From contig NIVC01002882.1 in the NCBI GenBank assembly GCA_002269645.1, forward strand, positions 62,001-126,000: a stretch of 64,000 nucleotides of DNA, given 5' to 3'. Source of the stretch: Macrostomum lignano (lineage: Eukaryota). A program made the position numbers and the translations under genes. The notes under the pieces are model-generated. The model was not told the origin of the DNA. It did not search any database and was given only the letters and a program-made list of their open reading frames with translations. Of the stretch, positions 5,308 to 38,655 are shown in pieces; the stretch's first letter is position 1; every line of letters begins with the position of its first letter.

Positions 5308-5472
5308 CGGGCTGACACCATGCTACCCGTGGGGTATTTTCTGCCCCTCGTTGTTAGTGAGTAAGCAAGTCAGTAATTACTTTGACTCTCAGCAGTCAAT
5401 ATCCACTATGTTGTAGCGTAATTTGTTGATAGGATTGCTTGGAGCGAAGGAAGGTGCTGCTGCAATCACTGA
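5308..5472 (+). pseudogene. Type-C Cys micropeptide pseudogene (C1)
   Basis: Exon 1 LTPCYPWGIFCP.. lacks ATG and carries a 1-bp insertion; exon 2 5433-5472 IAWSEGRCCCNH* matches C2/C4 including stop position; shares ~750 bp of upstream sequence (from ~4560). Confidence 0.75.
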
Positions 5473-5499
5473 TCAGTATTTTCCGCCGCTACTGTGACC

Positions 5500-7026
5500 G
5501 CTTCTAACGTCTTGTGTCGGGGATTTAGGGAAGAAACTGTTGAGCATTAGCTCTAGATTCTCTTCAGAGCTCTCTGTGACCGAGCCATCAGGTCTCTTCA
5601 CAACAGAGAGTTTAGAAAAACGGTCATTAGTGATTGCCTTAACCACGCGGGCTACGGGGCGAGAGCCCTCAAGCCCTTCGCAATATTGGCGCCACTTGGC
5701 CGTCTTGGCCCTTCTGACTTGGCCCTTAAACTCGTGGATCGCACGGGTATAGGCCTCGCTATCAGAAGGGTCTTTGGTTTTGAGCGCTCGCCTTTGGAGG
5801 GTCCTGGCTCGGCGCCGAAGGGCCCCGAGCTCTGGGTTCCACCAGGGAGCAGATTTCTTGCCTTTGTAGGCTTTTAGAGGACAGGCTGCTTCAAATGCAG
5901 TGGCCCAGGGAGGAGGCGAGATCATCCACCACCTGGCAGTCTGAGAGGTCACTGGGGGGGGGTCAAGATCCCGAAGGCCACGGCTCAGCTTCGAGCCAAA
6001 GGCGGCCCAATCGGTATTCCTGACGTTCCGACTCCAAGTGACCTTAGGCTTTTGCTTGGTCGGCCCAATGCAAAAACGGATAAAGCGGTGGTCCGAGAGC
6101 GAGTCCTCGTCCCACACTCGCCAGCCCGTAACTGCGGAGAGCAGTCCGGGTGAGGCGATGGTGGTGTCGATGACTTCGGCCCACCGCCCGTTATTGAACG
6201 TTGGTGCATTTCCCACGTTACAGAAATTGAGGTTTGTGCTGCTGACGTAGGCCAGCAGCTCCTCGCCTCTGTTATTGGTGTTCTTGCTGCCCCAATGCAG
6301 GTGGTGTGCGTTCACATCCCCTGCAATGAACAGCTCGACCGACGGGACGCGGCGTAGTCAATGAGGCTGACTAGCGCGTCGCAGACTACTGGGGCATCGC
6401 CTGGGAAATAGGCAGATGCTACCAGCACAGGTTTATTTGGAATGAAGCTATTGATTTGAACAACACAGATGTCCCAAGTCGAGAGATCAGGTCTCATCCA
6501 TGCCTCAAAAGCTTTTGCAGCAAAGACCAGAGATCTTGGGCGACGCTGAGAGTCCGCCATGCAAAAACAGGGGTAGCCAGATGGCACATTATTTGGCTTA
6601 CCTTTAGTCATCCAGGGCTCCTGCACGAAGACCAGGCCCGGAAGCTGTTGCTCTGTCGTGCGCATCAGGTTGACTGACGCCCGCCACGCAGTGCTGGGTG
6701 TTGATCTGCAGATACCAGGTAGCCGCTGGCATCAGTGCAGATCGGGTGTTGCAGTCGCCAGGAGTTCCTCCTCCTCCTCGGCGCTCACCAGCTTCGGGTC
6801 GGGGTCGCCGGTGTCCATGGGCTCCTCTTCAGCAAAAGGCCCCCGATTGGTCGGAAGGCAGTAGGCAGCGTTCGCCGCCCTTCGCCAGCCGGCCACGGGG
6901 TCCTCCGCTTCAGACTGGCCCAATGCCCTGGAGCAGCCAGCCGCCTGGGCAGGGGGGTCCGTCTCCAGTCGGCCCTGCCCCGAGGGGTTGGGCCCAGCTG
7001 GGACGTCCCCACCCTCCGTCCCTCAC
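5500..7026 (-). mobile_element. LINE internal fragment (ORF1 3' end + APE endonuclease part of ORF2), Loa/R1-like
   Basis: ORF2 starts MPAATWYLQINTQHC..LVFVQEPW..GDVNAHHLHWGS..IDTT..SDHRFIRF; frameshifts near 6680 and 6350; ends before RT. Confidence 0.9.
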
Positions 7027-7149
7027 AGTCAGTGAGTGAGTGACAGTCAGTCAGTCAGTCACCCACTCACTCAAGTCAGTCAGTCAGTCACTCACTCACT
7101 CACTCACTCAAGTCAGTCAGTCAGTCATTATTTTTCGTACACTACTAAG

Positions 7150-7279
7150 ACAGGCCAGGAGAGCCGGAAGTTGCTGCTGCGTACATTATTGGCTAAGAAG
7201 TATTCATCGGATTTTTGCGGTTGCTGTAGCAGCAGCTGAGCTTGTTTCTTGTTGCACTGGTATTTTGACGTCAATTTGA
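7150..7279 (+). pseudogene. Type-B Cys micropeptide, orphan exon 2 (B1)
   Basis: TAAG acceptor aligns with B2; QARRAGSCCCVHYWLRSIHRIFAVAVAAA..; exon 1 replaced by LINE fragment; 1-bp insertion in tail; preceded by AGTC repeat as in the B3 intron. Confidence 0.7.
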
Positions 7280-7845
7280 AAATTTTGAAGTCTCAGTGCT
7301 CGCAGAGCCCACAGAAAACTATGCGTACAACTAATAGAGTATCAATGAGTTTTGTTAAATCAGAAGCATATTTCATTTCATTTAAATGTAATTTGGCCTA
7401 CATATAAATGATGTTTCGATAGATACATGTAATTAAGATACGCTGCATGCTCTCACAGACTACAAACTGGAAAGTACCTAATCGCTGATCTATACTTAGC
7501 ACAGGCGTTGGGTTCTATTTTAGTTCAACGTTTTCGGTTTCGCTGCATACTTCAGCTAGTAGCCATAGTGGAACTTACTTGTACATTAGCTAGCTATGCT
7601 CGTACAATAGAAAGGAGACTTACGAGCGTATACTAAAATGTACATTTATAGCTGTACTGTGCATAGTACACCCCGATTAGGGATTTCCAATCTATGCTTA
7701 ATTACAAGCAATACTTAATGTCTAACTCTGTAGAAATACCCATTTGTATATACACTATAGCTTCGTTACGAAAGGGTATTTTGAAGTATTGTTGAATCGT
7801 AAAGCACTTCCTACAAGTATACGGATTTATAGTAAAACTAGTAAC

Positions 7846-7908
7846 CAGGTACAACTTTTTCGCCATGATTTGGCTTGTTTCGCGTCCCGGTAGTTTAAGT
7901 TGTCCCTG
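7846..7908. mobile_element. 63-bp MITE with 12-bp imperfect TIRs and 8-bp TSD
   Basis: CTAGTAAC|CAGGTACAACTT...AAGTTGTCCCTG|CTAGTAAC; absent from the paralogous position near 4890-4920. Confidence 0.8.
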
Positions 7909-36081: not shown

Positions 36082-36113
36082 GGTACTGCCTAATAATCTC
36101 ATGAGTATAAAAA
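36082..36113 (+). promoter_or_regulatory. GGTACTGCCT-N14-TATA promoter of A5
   Basis: Motif 36082-36091, TATAAAAA from 36106. Confidence 0.65.
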
Positions 36114-36216
36114 GCAGTGCCGTCTTGTCGATCAGTGGCTGCATGAATTTAAAAGAAATTGATTTAGCTACCTTGTTCCAACTGCAATCTGTTGAGTGAT
36201 TTAACTCCTAATAGAA

Positions 36217-36661
36217 ATGTCAAGCTGCTGTCGTTGCGTAGGACACCAAAGATGCGTCCGCTGCGTGTAAGTAGCGTCTGAATCATTTCTGTGTTGCTCC
36301 AGTTTATCTGAATTCGGTGTCCTTCATTTCGAAAAAAAAACATTTCAGCCTGATGAGGAAATACATTGAATGGCAAAGCAAAGCACTGAGCAGAGGTATG
36401 AGGACCCAGTGCTGCTATCTTCATCACGAGCAGGATATTCTGGCTGATGACGGTTGCTGCAAAAGAAATTGCAGTGTTTGCAACAACAACCGCAGGTTAG
36501 CTCATTTTTTGTTTTAGATATTATATAGCCTCTTAGCAACACGAAAAATATTGTAAATTTGCCTTTTCAGCAAGTACTTCTACAGCGGCAATCAACGCAA
36601 CGAGTACCCCAACTGCTGCTGCTACCATTTCTTTCCAAGTAAATATCGGGTCAATGATTAG
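36217..36661 (+). CDS. Type-A Cys/His-rich gene A5, 95 aa
   Basis: Exons 36217-36266, 36349-36495, 36571-36661, phase 2/2: MSSCCRCVGHQRCVRCVLMRKYIEWQSKALSRGMRTQCCYLHHEQDILADDGCCKRNCSVCNNNRSKYFYSGNQRNEYPNCCCYHFFPSKYRVND*. Confidence 0.83.
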
Positions 36662-37367
36662 ACAGGTACAGATCGACATGGATTGTTTGACTACAGAACC
36701 ACAATAATACGTTTTTTATAGTGTTATTTCACAATACGTCCCGTATTGTGATTATCAATAACCATTTCACTGCTAACTAAAAATCTTGAGTACCAAAACA
36801 TAAGACGTCATTATTTTCAAAAGGCGATAACAATACGAGTCATTTTTGAAGAATTCATAATTCACTTTCGGTTGCTGAAAGAATTCACATTTTGGATAAT
36901 TTTTTACCAATTCAACAAATAATCGATTGTCATATTGATGCAAGGAAGTGTATTAAAACAAATATACAATTATTCGGAATGCATGCGATTTCACATTCAT
37001 ATCTTTTTGAATATTTTTTTCCGCGTTCTAGCTTGTCAATAAATCGTTATGAAAACGAAAACTCTGAAAAACGTCAGTACAAAACATTCAATCTACTCTT
37101 TAGGTGTCTTTTCGGACACAAACACGGTAGATTCCTGTTCTATTTTAATAAGTGACAAAACCATCGCCTATGGGTTGGCCTCTTTTAGGCGTGACGCTTT
37201 ATTTTAATTTAGCAACAAAATTCAACTAAAATTCAAAATAGATTTGGGAAGTCGTCTATACATGCTGATGTGGCACCGTTCATAGTGACAATGACTTTTG
37301 AGAAACACTCAGTTACTCATTCATGCAGTCACCCACTCAGAGAACTAAGACACACTATTGACAAATA

Positions 37368-37775
37368 GGCAGACAGACAGGCAGACAGACAGACAGACAG
37401 ACAGACAGACAGACAGACAGACAGACAGACAGACAGACAGACAGACAGACAGACAGACAGACAGACAGACAGACACTAAGACAGACAGACGGACAGACAG
37501 ACAGACAGACACTAAGACAGACAGACAGACAGACAGACAGACAGACAGACAGACAGACAGACAGACAGACAGACAGACAGACAGACAGACAGACAGACAG
37601 ACAGACAGACAGACAGACAGACAGACAGACAGACAGACAGACAGACAGACAGACAGACAGACAGACAGACAGACAGACAGACAGACAGACAGACAGACAG
37701 ACAGACAGACAGACAGACAGACAGACAGACAGACAGACAGACATACAGACAGACAGACAGACAGGCAGACAGACA
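37368..37775. repeat. (GACA)n microsatellite
   Basis: Direct reading. Confidence 0.98.
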
Positions 37776-38216
37776 CTAAAATGTTAATCCCCCTTGAGCC
37801 ATGGCATCTCAGCAACTCCCCCTTGAGCCATGGCATCTCATCTTTTGCTATAACAACATCTTTAGACTCTTGGAGCAGAAAAATCTGTGGTTGAGTTGAA
37901 GTTAAAATCGCTGAACTGGTCCTTGTTAGAAGATGAAAAATGAAACTATTTGAGTTTTGCAGCTGAAAAACTTGCAGAATGTTTAATAACGAAAACGGCA
38001 TTTATTATCAGCAGTGAAATGTTTGTCAGTTTCATAGCTCTATTTAGCCATGAATCAGTTGAACCAGAGCTACTGGGAACAACCGCTTTAATCTTACAAT
38101 GCAGTACCGTGTAAACGGGTGTAGCTCGTATATGAATGGGATGCATTTTTAGTTTCCTTCAATGCTAGAAACTGCCTCAAGGAATTGCTTTTTGTTACCA
38201 GCTAAAAAGCTTAAGA

Positions 38217-38655
38217 ATGGTGGACTGCTGCAGCGGCAAATCGTTGTTTTTTTGGGATTGCGAAAATTGCACGTAAGTCAATCCAGCTGACATCTGAAAT
38301 TATTTTAATTTGAATTAGTCACTAAAAAGCGCCAGAGATATCCTGCTAACTTTCAGTAAGGTGAAGGACTTTGCCGCATTCTGGCACAATAATGGAGGCA
38401 ACGGAAGACTGTCTTGCAAGTGTTGCAAGCACTTCAGCAGCAATGCTGGATGCTACATTGTTTCCAACTGCAATGTGTGCAAGAAGTTCGGCTGGTGAGG
38501 ATGCCATGGGCAAATACTAGTACTAGCAGCTCTGTATATTTTTCCATACACATTTCTGTTGTTCTTACTCAAAATTTGGTTAAAATTTTAGTGCCAAAGA
38601 CAAGGACCACCCGAACTGCTGCTGCAGGCACTACTACATGTCTGGAGGACGATAA
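38217..38655 (+). CDS. Type-A Cys/His-rich gene A6, 85 aa
   Basis: Exons 38217-38272, 38357-38494, 38592-38655, phase 2/2: MVDCCSGKSLFFWDCENCTKVKDFAAFWHNNGGNGRLSCKCCKHFSSNAGCYIVSNCNVCKKFGCAKDKDHPNCCCRHYYMSGGR*. Confidence 0.8.

Follow-up and report, generated by a model that had tools for sequence, protein, structure and literature searches.

A Macrostomum lignano tandem array of small cysteine- and histidine-rich genes with a putative metal-binding module

About twelve tandem copies of small Cys/His-rich genes lie on the + strand of Macrostomum lignano contig NIVC01002882.1, in a 33-kb stretch at positions 5308-38655 of the window (the whole 64,000 nucleotides analysed). The surrounding region is rich in satellites and transposon fragments. 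Gene models rebuilt programmatically comprise ten ATG-initiated micro-genes (A_8321, A_23128, T_12439, T_21045, B_27112, B_28403, B_31848, B_33841, B_36217 and B_38217), eight of which translate cleanly to their stop while B_27112 and B_31848 carry one defect each, and two pseudogenes. All introns (16/16) are GT-AG and in phase 2, exon 1 ends 2 nt past C-x2-C in every model and CCC-x-H is present in the last exon of every copy modelled. The earlier note, which had described same-strand paralogues with a Cys/His scaffold in common and introns at conserved places, proved correct almost to the base regarding copies, pseudogenes, defects, exon signatures and the example junctions 8367/8445, 28440/29175 and 34134/34538. 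In translation CCC-x-H occurs 13 times on the + strand versus once on the - strand, an approximately 100-fold enrichment over the 0.07-0.14 expected per strand in shuffled or order-2 Markov sequence.

The module has the scaffold C(C)-Xn-C-X2-C, a phase-2 intron, then Xn-C-C-(C)-X-H, and spans two exons and ~28-50 residues. Five Cys are invariant per module, two more are usual and the His is found in 13 of 14 aligned modules. Three architectures are present, T (50-53 aa), A (28 aa) and B (85-103 aa), all below 105 aa and with a Cys content of 13-25%. Kyte-Doolittle hydropathy detected no N-terminal hydrophobic leader in any member except the Cys/Pro-rich module itself, in agreement with the reported absence of a signal peptide.

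Both intact type T genes, T_12439 (exons 12439-12485 and 12578-12692, + strand; 53 aa, MVCICRRPLLFCPICWAAKIAGSCCCVHWRRRVHMVSVVAAGAAVLSVVALTM, then stop) and T_21045 (exons 21045-21085 and 21770-21881, + strand; 50 aa), end in a hydrophobic segment of 19-21 residues with Kyte-Doolittle values of 2.3-2.4 over 19 residues (hydropathy maximum 2.26 at residues 35-53 in T_12439), and are predicted to be tail-anchored membrane proteins. The intron of T_21045 contains a 595-bp (TCAG)n array. This C-terminal tail had been overlooked, as had the origin of type A by nonsense truncation. Judged from the alignment, the type A genes A_8321 (exons 8321-8367 and 8445-8484, + strand, with a 77-nt phase-2 intron; 28 aa, MASNCCPLGIFCPFCWIAWSQGRCCCRH, then stop) and A_23128 (exons 23128-23174 and 23252-23291, + strand; 28 aa, MLTPCCPWGILCGNCRAAWREGRCCCRH, then stop) are type T genes shortened to 28 aa by TGG to TGA at the Trp codon directly after CCC-x-H. 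VHW (CAT TGG) of type T aligns with RH-stop (CAC TGA) of type A, and remnants of the TM-coding part are still present in the type A 3'UTR, where GCnGCnGCnGTG (AAFDAAAAV) aligns with the type T tail VVAAGAAV. Conservation of the A_8321 unit with A_23128 extends over ~300 bp of upstream sequence and is also seen in L003, one of three paralogous arrays (this array, L002 and L003) that keep the genes. L003 holds an intact type T second exon and a further intact type A ORF; the latter retains 7 Cys, has a single 3-nt deletion that is in frame and carries Gln in place of His.

One pseudogene is of type A: psiA_5308 (exon-1-like 5313-5357, exon-2-like 5433-5472, + strand; IAWSEGRCCCNH, then stop) can be aligned to the units of A_8321 and A_23128 over ~440 bp and has lost the ancestral ATG and three of four exon-1 Cys. 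The other, psiT_7150 (7150..7279, + strand), is an orphan type T second exon (..AGSCCCVHYW..). Its alignment with T_12439 and T_21045 covers their exon 2 and 3'UTR, and its TM-coding part has 3 nt inserted and a 1-nt indel. Immediately upstream of psiT_7150 is a (GTCA)n-like microsatellite; further upstream a non-LTR retroelement fragment, with an Exo_endo_phos_2 ORF (5473-6315, - strand), cuts it off from any preceding sequence.

The cysteines of these micro-proteins could also be read as S-palmitoylation sites, the CC and CCC clusters then pinning them to membranes. In type T CCCVHWRRR directly precedes the TM helix, with CCC 8-10 residues before it, and a juxtamembrane Cys before a TM segment is a classic acylation position, as in SNARE or spike cysteines. 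N-termini such as MECCRRR, MSSCCRC, MSSCCYC and MVDCC fit as well, since M-x-x-CC followed by basic residues resembles GAP-43-type dual palmitoylation. Acylation would, however, leave the near-invariant His, the invariant C-x2-C and a conserved type B segment (D/K-Y-I-x-W) unexplained, and such sites usually tolerate positional drift, whereas here 0/94 Cys have moved; we regard it as a quite improbable explanation.

Type B genes had been taken to encode single peptides, which was not borne out: they comprise three exons and encode hydrophilic two-module proteins of 85-103 aa with a pI of 8.2-8.9 and about 10-13% F/W/Y, the aromatic, helix-like D/K-Y-I-x-W segment following C-x2-C in module 1. 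All lie on the + strand. B_28403 (exons 28403-28440, 29175-29309 and 29391-29475) encodes the two-module, 85-aa PAA54600.1 (Mlig004807g1), and its intron 1 contains a 21-bp minisatellite. B_33841 (exons 33841-33893, 33976-34134 and 34538-34637) encodes 103 aa with two modules; a repeat in its intron 2 is also found, inverted, at window positions 22210-22409. B_36217 (exons 36217-36266, 36349-36495 and 36571-36661) corresponds to PAA54602.1 (Mlig028464g1, 95 aa) and B_38217 (exons 38217-38272, 38357-38494 and 38592-38655) to PAA54603.1 (Mlig002597g1, 85 aa). B_27112 (exons 27112-27155, 27368-27488 and 27783-27852) is a decaying copy in which exon 2 ends in phase 0 while exon 3 needs phase 2, and in which module 1 is devoid of its His; because exon 1 and the donor of exon 2 are missing from the L002 copy, B_27112 is probably a pseudogene. 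In B_31848 (exons 31848-31915, 32002-32154 and 32236-32324) the frame is shifted by a T7 run at ~32240. The L002 copy has T6, is 99.9% identical and encodes an intact 102-aa protein, P0006 (Mlig005498g2). Since this single base is the sole difference in 1077 bp, the T7 run reflects either a homopolymer error in the assembly or a frameshift that arose very recently.

The spliced models of B_28403, B_36217 and B_38217 are exact protein matches to the GenBank 'hypothetical proteins' PAA54600, PAA54602 and PAA54603. At B_33841 an annotated 63-aa CDS (34086-34680) has the same 34134/34538 junction in a different frame. The M. lignano annotation was built only from RNA-seq, using StringTie, TACO and TransDecoder (PMC5730564), and four type B loci thus have transcript support. 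The array had been described as hidden, which is true only in part: four of six type B loci have RNA-seq-based annotations. Types A and T have no annotated gene, although the region with gene calls includes T_21045 and A_23128.

Type B alone might be functional, types A and T being untranscribed or non-coding relics that look gene-like as young duplicates. Beyond the lacking annotation, this would account for type A exons no better conserved than their introns or flanks, pN/pS of 0.6-0.9, the stop that removes the TM tail in all type A copies and the two of seven A/T copies that are clearly dead. Yet products of 28-53 aa may fall below the length limit of the ORF caller, so that absence from the annotation may be uninformative. 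Moreover, at an intron divergence of 16-21% three type A copies still have their ATG, GT-AG sites, an open frame and all 7 Cys; the two intact type T copies have kept these features at about 23% flank divergence, and the only indels are in-frame ones. In a neutral simulation of types A and T run at intron or flank divergence, all Cys, the ATG and the open frame were kept in only 0.2-1.5% of trials per pair, and psiA_5308 shows what real decay looks like at similar divergence. We consider a functional type B with A/T relics unlikely.

Between recent paralogue pairs Cys residues were changed in 0/94 cases versus 77/481 for other residues (Fisher 5e-7), with pN/pS of ~0.8-2.3 between recent copies. 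The earlier note had named dN/dS of about 1 with Cys codons no better kept than their neighbours as evidence against its proposal; pN/pS between recent copies is indeed near 1, but the Cys codons are far better kept. In an alignment of five type B proteins 12/13 Cys columns are invariant versus 5/52 other columns (Fisher 2e-8). The Cys and His codons differ synonymously (TGC/TGT, CAC/CAT) in this alignment, which shows that there was time enough for divergence at these positions, and pS of 0.75-1.0 (saturated) contrasts with pN of 0.33-0.51 between deep type B paralogues. Selection on the Cys/His scaffold is thus strict, with fast change everywhere else. That all of these loci are transcribed junk made up of chance ORFs devoid of protein function might be suspected in a region full of satellites and transposon fragments and from the lack of homologues outside the species. 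It is nevertheless barely credible, as type B frames, splice sites and 12/13 Cys columns are kept at saturated synonymous divergence and the genes persist in three independent paralogous arrays. These are real genes whose cysteines are maintained by selection. Comparison of the paralogous arrays shows loss and truncation of genes as well as a mosaic pattern of identity, which suggests gene conversion.

Relatives outside M. lignano were found neither in Pfam, NCBIfam and PDB sequences nor among 1.84 billion proteins scanned exhaustively with HMMER, where the type B profile matched M. lignano only; this supports the earlier view that the genes belong to no named family. The term superfamily was used more freely than the sequences allow. 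Types A/T and B share intron phase and position and are co-located in one array, and their relationship is based mainly on this, the sequence link being weak (hhalign P = 0.0012, probability 19%).

Regarding function, the earlier note had proposed either metal binding or a disulfide-crosslinked structural role; a lineage-restricted Zn/Cu-thiolate binding module is most likely. We give about an even chance to the full proposal of small intracellular proteins that form a family confined to Macrostomum, evolving as a birth-and-death tandem array, with the Cys/His module as metal site. The conserved thiolate/imidazole set would form a metal-binding site, in our view rather for Zn(II) or Cu(I), and 6-8 ligands per module could build a small structural Zn site or a metallothionein-like cluster. 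On this metal-site reading the module would therefore be soluble in types A and B and membrane-tethered in type T, where a single module is followed by basic residues and the C-terminal TM helix and would face the cytosol. Size (<105 aa), Cys content (13-25%), intracellular location and modularity fit metal-binding proteins and agree with how metallothioneins are operationally defined in a definition cited in PMC7826182. AlphaFold2 gave pLDDT of 39 (full length) and 50 (module), at which ligand geometry is not readable. Against the metal site speak the abundance of aromatics and His and the long spacers between Cys clusters (8-25 residues), both unlike classical metallothioneins, and the His to Gln replacement in type A of L003. 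Unsystematic inspection of promoters revealed no convincing metal-response element; one TGCACAC lies upstream of the B_28403 ATG, about the number expected by chance (roughly 1.5, hand estimate). Furthermore, pN/pS of ~1-2 in recent pairs and rapid gene turnover are met more often in reproductive, immune or structural genes than in metal buffers with a housekeeping role.

These latter features would suit disulfide-crosslinked structural proteins that harden a structure inside cells, for instance the copulatory stylet or sperm parts, with Cys as crosslink points instead of ligands. Free-living flatworms build their hard parts inside cells, and the reproductive genes of Macrostomum evolve rapidly; the missing signal peptide, high Cys and Tyr/Phe/Trp content, basic pI, birth-and-death array, pN/pS >=1 at non-Cys sites and mosaic identity suggesting gene conversion all agree. 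But a near-invariant His, fixed C-x2-C and position-specific scaffold are tighter than crosslinking needs, and the predicted membrane anchor of type T is odd for a matrix protein. In the published supplementary material searched, the gene ids were absent and no expression data placed the genes in testis, stylet or sperm. Crosslinking, with palmitoylation the chief rival of metal binding, appears to us unlikely. The family resembles high-sulfur keratin-associated and sperm cysteine-rich proteins of mammals, which evolve by duplication, loss and gene conversion, in being small, intracellular, Cys-rich with aromatics and arranged in fast-evolving tandem arrays. KRTAPs, however, are intronless with pentapeptide CCxPx repeats, unlike the fixed, non-repetitive scaffold with conserved His and phase-2 introns found here, and no sequence similarity to either group was detected.

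Other known systems are similar in part. Like metallothioneins, the family is intracellular, below ~100 aa, with 13-25% Cys in CC/CxC/CxxC motifs, duplicated Cys modules, tandem copies, lineage specificity and a possible de novo origin; modular mollusc and tunicate metallothioneins are described within a polyphyletic superfamily (PMC7826182). It differs in its many aromatics and His, 8-25 residue spacers, conserved helix-like segment and one membrane-anchored architecture, and no metallothionein of Pfam matched. Relative to the 15-30% range of Cys content, types B (14-18%) and T (13-14%) lie at the bottom or slightly beneath it. CYSTM is reportedly a cysteine-rich tail-anchored transmembrane module (Venancio and Aravind are said to have described it in 2010). 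Type T is likewise very small and predicted tail-anchored, with a Cys cluster beside its C-terminal TM helix, but its Cys lie in the cytosolic part and its TM segment is Ala/Val/Ser-rich without Cys. In CYSTM the cysteines sit inside the TM helix. PLAC8, cornifelin and plant PCR proteins carry a 'CCxxxxCPC' motif, and 'CCPLGIFCPFC ... CCC' of types A/T recalls PLAC8 'CLCGTFCFPC ... ECCLC'. Some PLAC8 proteins affect Cd/Zn handling; their domains of ~100 aa have a conserved C-terminal half, which is absent from this family. Neither CYSTM nor PLAC8 was matched in Pfam at E <= 10, and the exhaustive HMMER scan yielded no PLAC8 match.

UniRef names the L002 orthologue Mlig005498g2 DUF2769 (PF10967), likewise a small protein with repeated CxC/CxxC motifs that in the literature found concerns archaeal proteins only. 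This identity was rejected, since the current Pfam model matched no family member at E <= 10 and the type B profile matched nothing outside M. lignano among the 1.84 billion proteins; in our view the name was assigned automatically and is not reproducible. Downstream of the array, 43746..44140 (+ strand) encodes ..CTCCSFATSCTTHSRCRRCRF, then stop, and ~300 bp on, ..HPEHCCCYLTRDC, then stop, in one frame and without ATG. The tblastn matches here are weak (E = 0.006 to 0.36); together with inspection they point, with low confidence, to a possible degenerate thirteenth copy outside 5308-38655.

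All gene models of the array were rebuilt by placing exons through exact string search, and phase, splice sites and translation were then verified for each copy. The all-frame translation of the window contains 13 instances of CCC-x-H on the + strand and a single one on the - strand, against an expectation of 0.07-0.14 per strand in shuffled or Markov sequence. Moreover, searching for ATG...C-x2-C ahead of a GT donor recovered first exons matching the family. The rebuilt models reproduce the ten ATG-initiated copies described in the earlier note, eight of which are open to a stop, and each of the 16 introns has GT-AG ends and phase 2; the junctions 8367/8445, 28440/29175 and 34134/34538 predicted there were obtained at exactly the same positions. 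Introns are mostly 75-97 nt long. The long ones are occupied by repeats, namely (TCAG)n in the type T gene T_21045, a 21-bp minisatellite in the type B gene B_28403, a 12-bp array in its neighbour B_27112 and, in B_33841, the interspersed repeat described below. Elsewhere in the window no further convincing copy was found, apart from a possible degenerate 13th member at 43746-44140 (+), outside the range first assigned to the array, which lacks an ATG and in one frame gives ..CTCCSFATSCTTHSRCRRCRF* followed by ..HPEHCCCYL... No type T relic was found beside the (CTGT)n array at 3530-3960.

Three architectures are present, all on the + strand. Type T (T_12439, T_21045 and the orphan pseudogene exon psiT_7150) consists of C-x-C...C-P-x-C, an intron, G-S-CCC-V-H-W, basic residues and a hydrophobic C-terminus that had escaped the earlier note. 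This C-terminus comprises 19-21 residues rich in Ala, Val and Ser (MVSVVAAGAAVLSVVALTM; Kyte-Doolittle 2.3-2.4) and contains no Cys; the hydropathy maximum (2.26-2.42) lies across the last 19 residues of the protein, with at most two residues beyond the transmembrane segment (TM). With a single TM less than ~30 residues from the C-terminus and no N-terminal signal, type T is a predicted tail-anchored membrane protein. Type A (A_8321, A_23128 and the pseudogene psiA_5308) has the same two exons and ends with ...CCC-R-H-stop after 28 aa. Judging by the alignments, type A is a type T gene truncated by a nonsense mutation and duplicated afterwards, since its TGA stop stands at the position of the type T TGG (Trp) codon and a remnant resembling a decayed TM persists behind the stop (AAFDAAAAV vs VVAAGAAV in type T). 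T and A genes are paired ~1.2-1.4 kb apart (psiT_7150 with A_8321, T_21045 with A_23128), a pairing also found in the paralogous array on contig NIVC01000551.1 (L003). Type B, with six loci at 27112-38655, has three exons and two modules and encodes hydrophilic proteins of 85-103 aa and pI 8.2-8.9, each containing 10-11 F/W/Y and 4-6 His. Their N-termini are polar and basic, and a mean hydropathy of -0.7 to 0.3 across the initial 20 residues supports, by this measure, the claimed lack of a signal peptide.

An alignment of 14-15 sequences gives the module consensus C(C)-Xn-C-X2-C-Xn-C-C(C)-X-H, in which five Cys are invariant and the His is present in 13 of 14 modules. Spacers between Cys clusters span 8-25 residues. 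At protein lengths of 28-103 aa, Cys accounts for 25% of the residues in type A, for 13-14% in type T and for 14-18% in type B. Profile-profile comparison of types T and A with the type B modules yields a weak score (P = 0.0012). The designation as one superfamily therefore stands on this score taken together with the identical phase and position of the intron and the shared array.

Concerning selection, deep type B paralogues are saturated at synonymous sites (pS 0.75-1.0; pN 0.33-0.51). Recent pairs show pN/pS of 0.8-2.3, and their exons are no more conserved than their introns. Cys residues changed in 0 of 94 cases vs 77 of 481 for other residues (Fisher 5e-7), and among the columns of the type B alignment, invariance extends to 12 of the 13 that hold Cys vs 5 of the 52 others (2e-8). 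Under neutral substitution at the intron/flank rate, all Cys, the ATG and the open frame survive in 0.2-1.5% of trials per type A or T pair; real decay is exemplified by psiA_5308. Given the Cys invariance, the neutral simulation and the contrast with this pseudogene, these genes do not display the pattern that the earlier note had set against its own proposal, a dN/dS of ~1 with Cys codons kept no better than their neighbours.

Two paralogous M. lignano arrays allow a closer comparison. The array on NIVC01000905.1 (L002) is collinear with window positions 25.6-41.7 kb at 90-99.9% identity. In the region of B_31848, a type B copy with one defect, a single base differs in 1077, the window having T7 and L002 T6. 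The T6 copy, otherwise identical, encodes an intact 102-aa protein (P0006), so the defect in the window reflects either an error in the homopolymer or a frameshift of very recent origin. Losses in L002 comprise exons 2-3 of B_28403 together with exon 1 and the donor of B_27112. L003 is more diverged and its order is partly changed. It retains a type T second exon with intact TM, intact genes resembling B_31848 and B_28403, and an intact type A gene (MSTSCCALKKCPNCRAARRNNRCCCRQ*) with all 7 Cys kept, His replaced by Gln and one in-frame 3-nt deletion. Identity between the window and L003 is mosaic (12186-13255, 10001-10473), identical whole exons and introns lying beside clustered, almost purely non-synonymous changes between the Cys. 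Thus exon 3 of B_28403 is identical except for the stop codon and its exon 1 is ~60% identical, and module 2 of B_31848 holds nearly all differences. This suggests gene conversion or localized diversification; conversion, localized positive selection or both could be at work.

The array had been called hidden. This applies to several micro-genes of types A and T; part of the family is already annotated. B_28403, B_36217 and B_38217 are identical to PAA54600.1, PAA54602.1 and PAA54603.1, respectively, each a 'hypothetical protein'. The Mlig_3_7 annotation was built from RNA-seq assemblies only (StringTie and TACO, with gene boundaries set by trans-splicing and poly(A) evidence and ORFs from TransDecoder; PMC5730564), so the junctions of these three genes are transcript-supported. 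A further annotated CDS of 63 aa at 34086-34680 (192 nt after removal of a 403-nt intron) uses the junction 34134/34538. Its frame (MAVATRTDAKFAST...) turns the Cys codons of the type B gene B_33841 into Ala, and the frame common to the paralogues is the Cys-rich one. This CDS probably represents a wrongly called ORF, its transcript model being truncated at the 5' end. At least one annotated CDS at the array is in the wrong frame. No annotated product was found for types A and T, whose 28-53 aa may lie below the length reach of the ORF caller; spliced genes of this size under clear selection are thus absent from a transcript-based annotation. The identifiers Mlig028464, Mlig002597 and Mlig004807 were not found in the full texts or searched supplements of M. 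lignano papers, and a literature search combining Macrostomum with cysteine-rich, metallothionein or stylet returned nothing relevant. The annotated partial protein P0007 (L002 12300-12351, orthologous to window ~38610-38630) joins ...CKKFS to WHYYMSGRR; its model therefore splices to the CAG inside TGC-TGC-AGG (CCC-R), an alternative acceptor whose use leaves out the CCC motif. The result may be a genuine isoform, or it may have arisen in transcript assembly.

The claim that the family belongs to no named one was borne out by Pfam, NCBIfam, PDB sequence and HMMER searches, which returned no relatives outside M. lignano. Pfam-A at E <= 10 gave nothing relevant for 11 family proteins, NCBIfam gave chance matches only, and PDB sequence searches with full-length and module profiles gave nothing or CxxCH heme-motif noise at E ~1. 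Word-seeded homologue searches, started from the 103-aa model or from the type A/T alignment, found nothing. HMMER with the type B profile against 1.84e9 proteins, from a set with one representative per 50% cluster of ~15 billion, retrieved four clusters, and a homologue search with the same alignment against 90% identity clusters retrieved six, all from M. lignano. Rfam gave no RNA family in the whole window. The UniRef label DUF2769 (PF10967) of P0006 was rejected for want of a Pfam or NCBIfam match at E <= 10; in the literature found, DUF2769 occurs in archaeal proteins only. PLAC8 (PF04749) fragments were likewise rejected, having neither profile support nor a Pfam match at E <= 10: PLAC8 is a ~100-aa domain with CCxxxxCPC and a conserved C-terminal Cys region, whereas the family proteins fall short of such a domain and have no counterpart of its C-terminal half. 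A likeness to PLAC8 (CCxxxxCPC), CYSTM, keratin-associated proteins and the copper motifs of Cox17/Mac1 did not hold wherever it could be tested. The family is real and, by these searches, lineage-restricted and without named relatives; orphan Cys-rich tandem families are of a familiar kind.

What is observed is a selected Cys/His scaffold in a small intracellular protein with one predicted membrane-tethered form. Such a scaffold may ligate metal, as a structural Zn site or a metallothionein-like Zn/Cu cluster, a tentative reading that we hold with not quite even confidence. Metallothioneins are loosely defined as intracellular, modular, possibly de novo proteins of <100 aa with 15-30% Cys (PMC7826182). 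Size (28-103 aa) and predicted location fit this definition in part, and 13-25% Cys lies at its lower edge. Few aromatics and His and dense CxC/CC/CxxC are the rule in metallothioneins, which form metal-thiolate clusters and are often inducible by metals; type B contains both aromatics and His and has long spacers, and the Pfam metallothionein model matched none of 11 family proteins at E <= 10. In the promoters a single candidate for a metal-response element (TGCACAC) was noticed by eye, about the number estimated for chance. The family may instead consist of disulfide-crosslinked structural proteins, which we consider unlikely; secreted Cys-rich peptides such as toxins, defensins and seminal-fluid peptides carry an N-terminal signal peptide, unlike the family by hydropathy. 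Palmitoylated membrane micro-proteins seem quite improbable. CYSTM (PF12734) has its Cys cluster within the TM helix, whereas the TM of type T has no Cys and no Pfam match. The rest of our expectation falls to other functions. AlphaFold2 gave pLDDT 39 for full-length B_33841 (5 sequences) and 50 for one module (14 sequences), values too low to inform on the fold.

Returning to metal binding, it is conceivable, though rather unlikely, that a Macrostomum-born domain of 5-7 Cys and one His, split by a phase-2 intron, constitutes a new metal-binding fold in three forms (tail-anchored, a free 28-residue nonsense-derived micropeptide and a duplicated soluble two-module protein), in an array diversifying by positive selection except at the ligands. 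If true, positive selection outside the ligands would point to an arms-race role in reproduction, sexual conflict or metal-based defence over housekeeping metal buffering. RNAi is feasible in M. lignano. Transgenesis is available as well (PMC5730564). Should the module bind metal, a flatworm amenable to genetics would hold a metal-binding family that is specific to its lineage and probably arose de novo, with the membrane-anchored form, the micropeptide and the duplicated module united at one locus. Such a locus would be a compact natural experiment on the birth, duplication, truncation and loss of small Cys-rich domains. Were the proteins structural or reproductive, they would instead give molecular access to the hard parts or sperm of flatworms. 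For now, the array is a well-defined orphan family, partly annotated already, with a putative metal function.

In most genes a TATA-like box precedes the ATG by 20-110 nt, and in most a poly(A) signal lies downstream. B_31848 (31700-31760), B_33841 (33690-33750) and B_36217 (36040-36095) share the promoter element GGTACTGCCT, which is placed 16-25 bp ahead of their TATA-like boxes and frequently accompanied by the inverted form GGCAGTACC; degenerate versions occur in B_28403 (28270-28285) and B_38217 (38095-38110). The element is a candidate common regulatory site of type B genes.

Transposon fragments break up the array: an Exo_endo_phos_2 endonuclease/reverse-transcriptase ORF lies between psiA_5308 and psiT_7150 (5473-6315, -), and a DDE_Tnp_4 transposase fragment and two RNase H fragments follow (13637-14260, -; 19406-20299, +; 24683-25171, +). 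In three paralogues (7030-7128, 21143-21737, L003 ~9-590) a (GTCA/TCAG)n microsatellite directly precedes the second exon of type T and therefore predates the duplications; at T_21045 it is intronic and the splice acceptor is kept. A tRNA-like or SINE-like interspersed repeat of ~200 bp with the motif 'GAATCGAACCCCCGACCTTC' occurs in intron 2 of B_33841 (34202-34410, +), inverted between T_21045 and A_23128 (22210-22409, -), and at L002 8156-8355; Rfam gave no match to it at gathering score. The block at 9200-11500, probably a further mobile element, is GC-rich (53%). It has overlapping ORFs on both strands at 9667-10450, an acidic short ORF from 9231 (MESENEYAAIFTDDDS...) and, at 11739-11944, tandem copies of a 15-bp unit; the one ORF of the block searched (9667-10257) has no Pfam domain. 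Dense mini- and microsatellites of periods 4-140 occupy the type B spacers and some introns (25782-26794, 27217-27346, 28536-29127, 29937-30628, 30679-31126, 33044-33632, 35014-36002 and 37370-37775). Among them, the 20-bp array at 29937-30628 is similar to part of the type A promoter (TAGAACAGGGTAGA).
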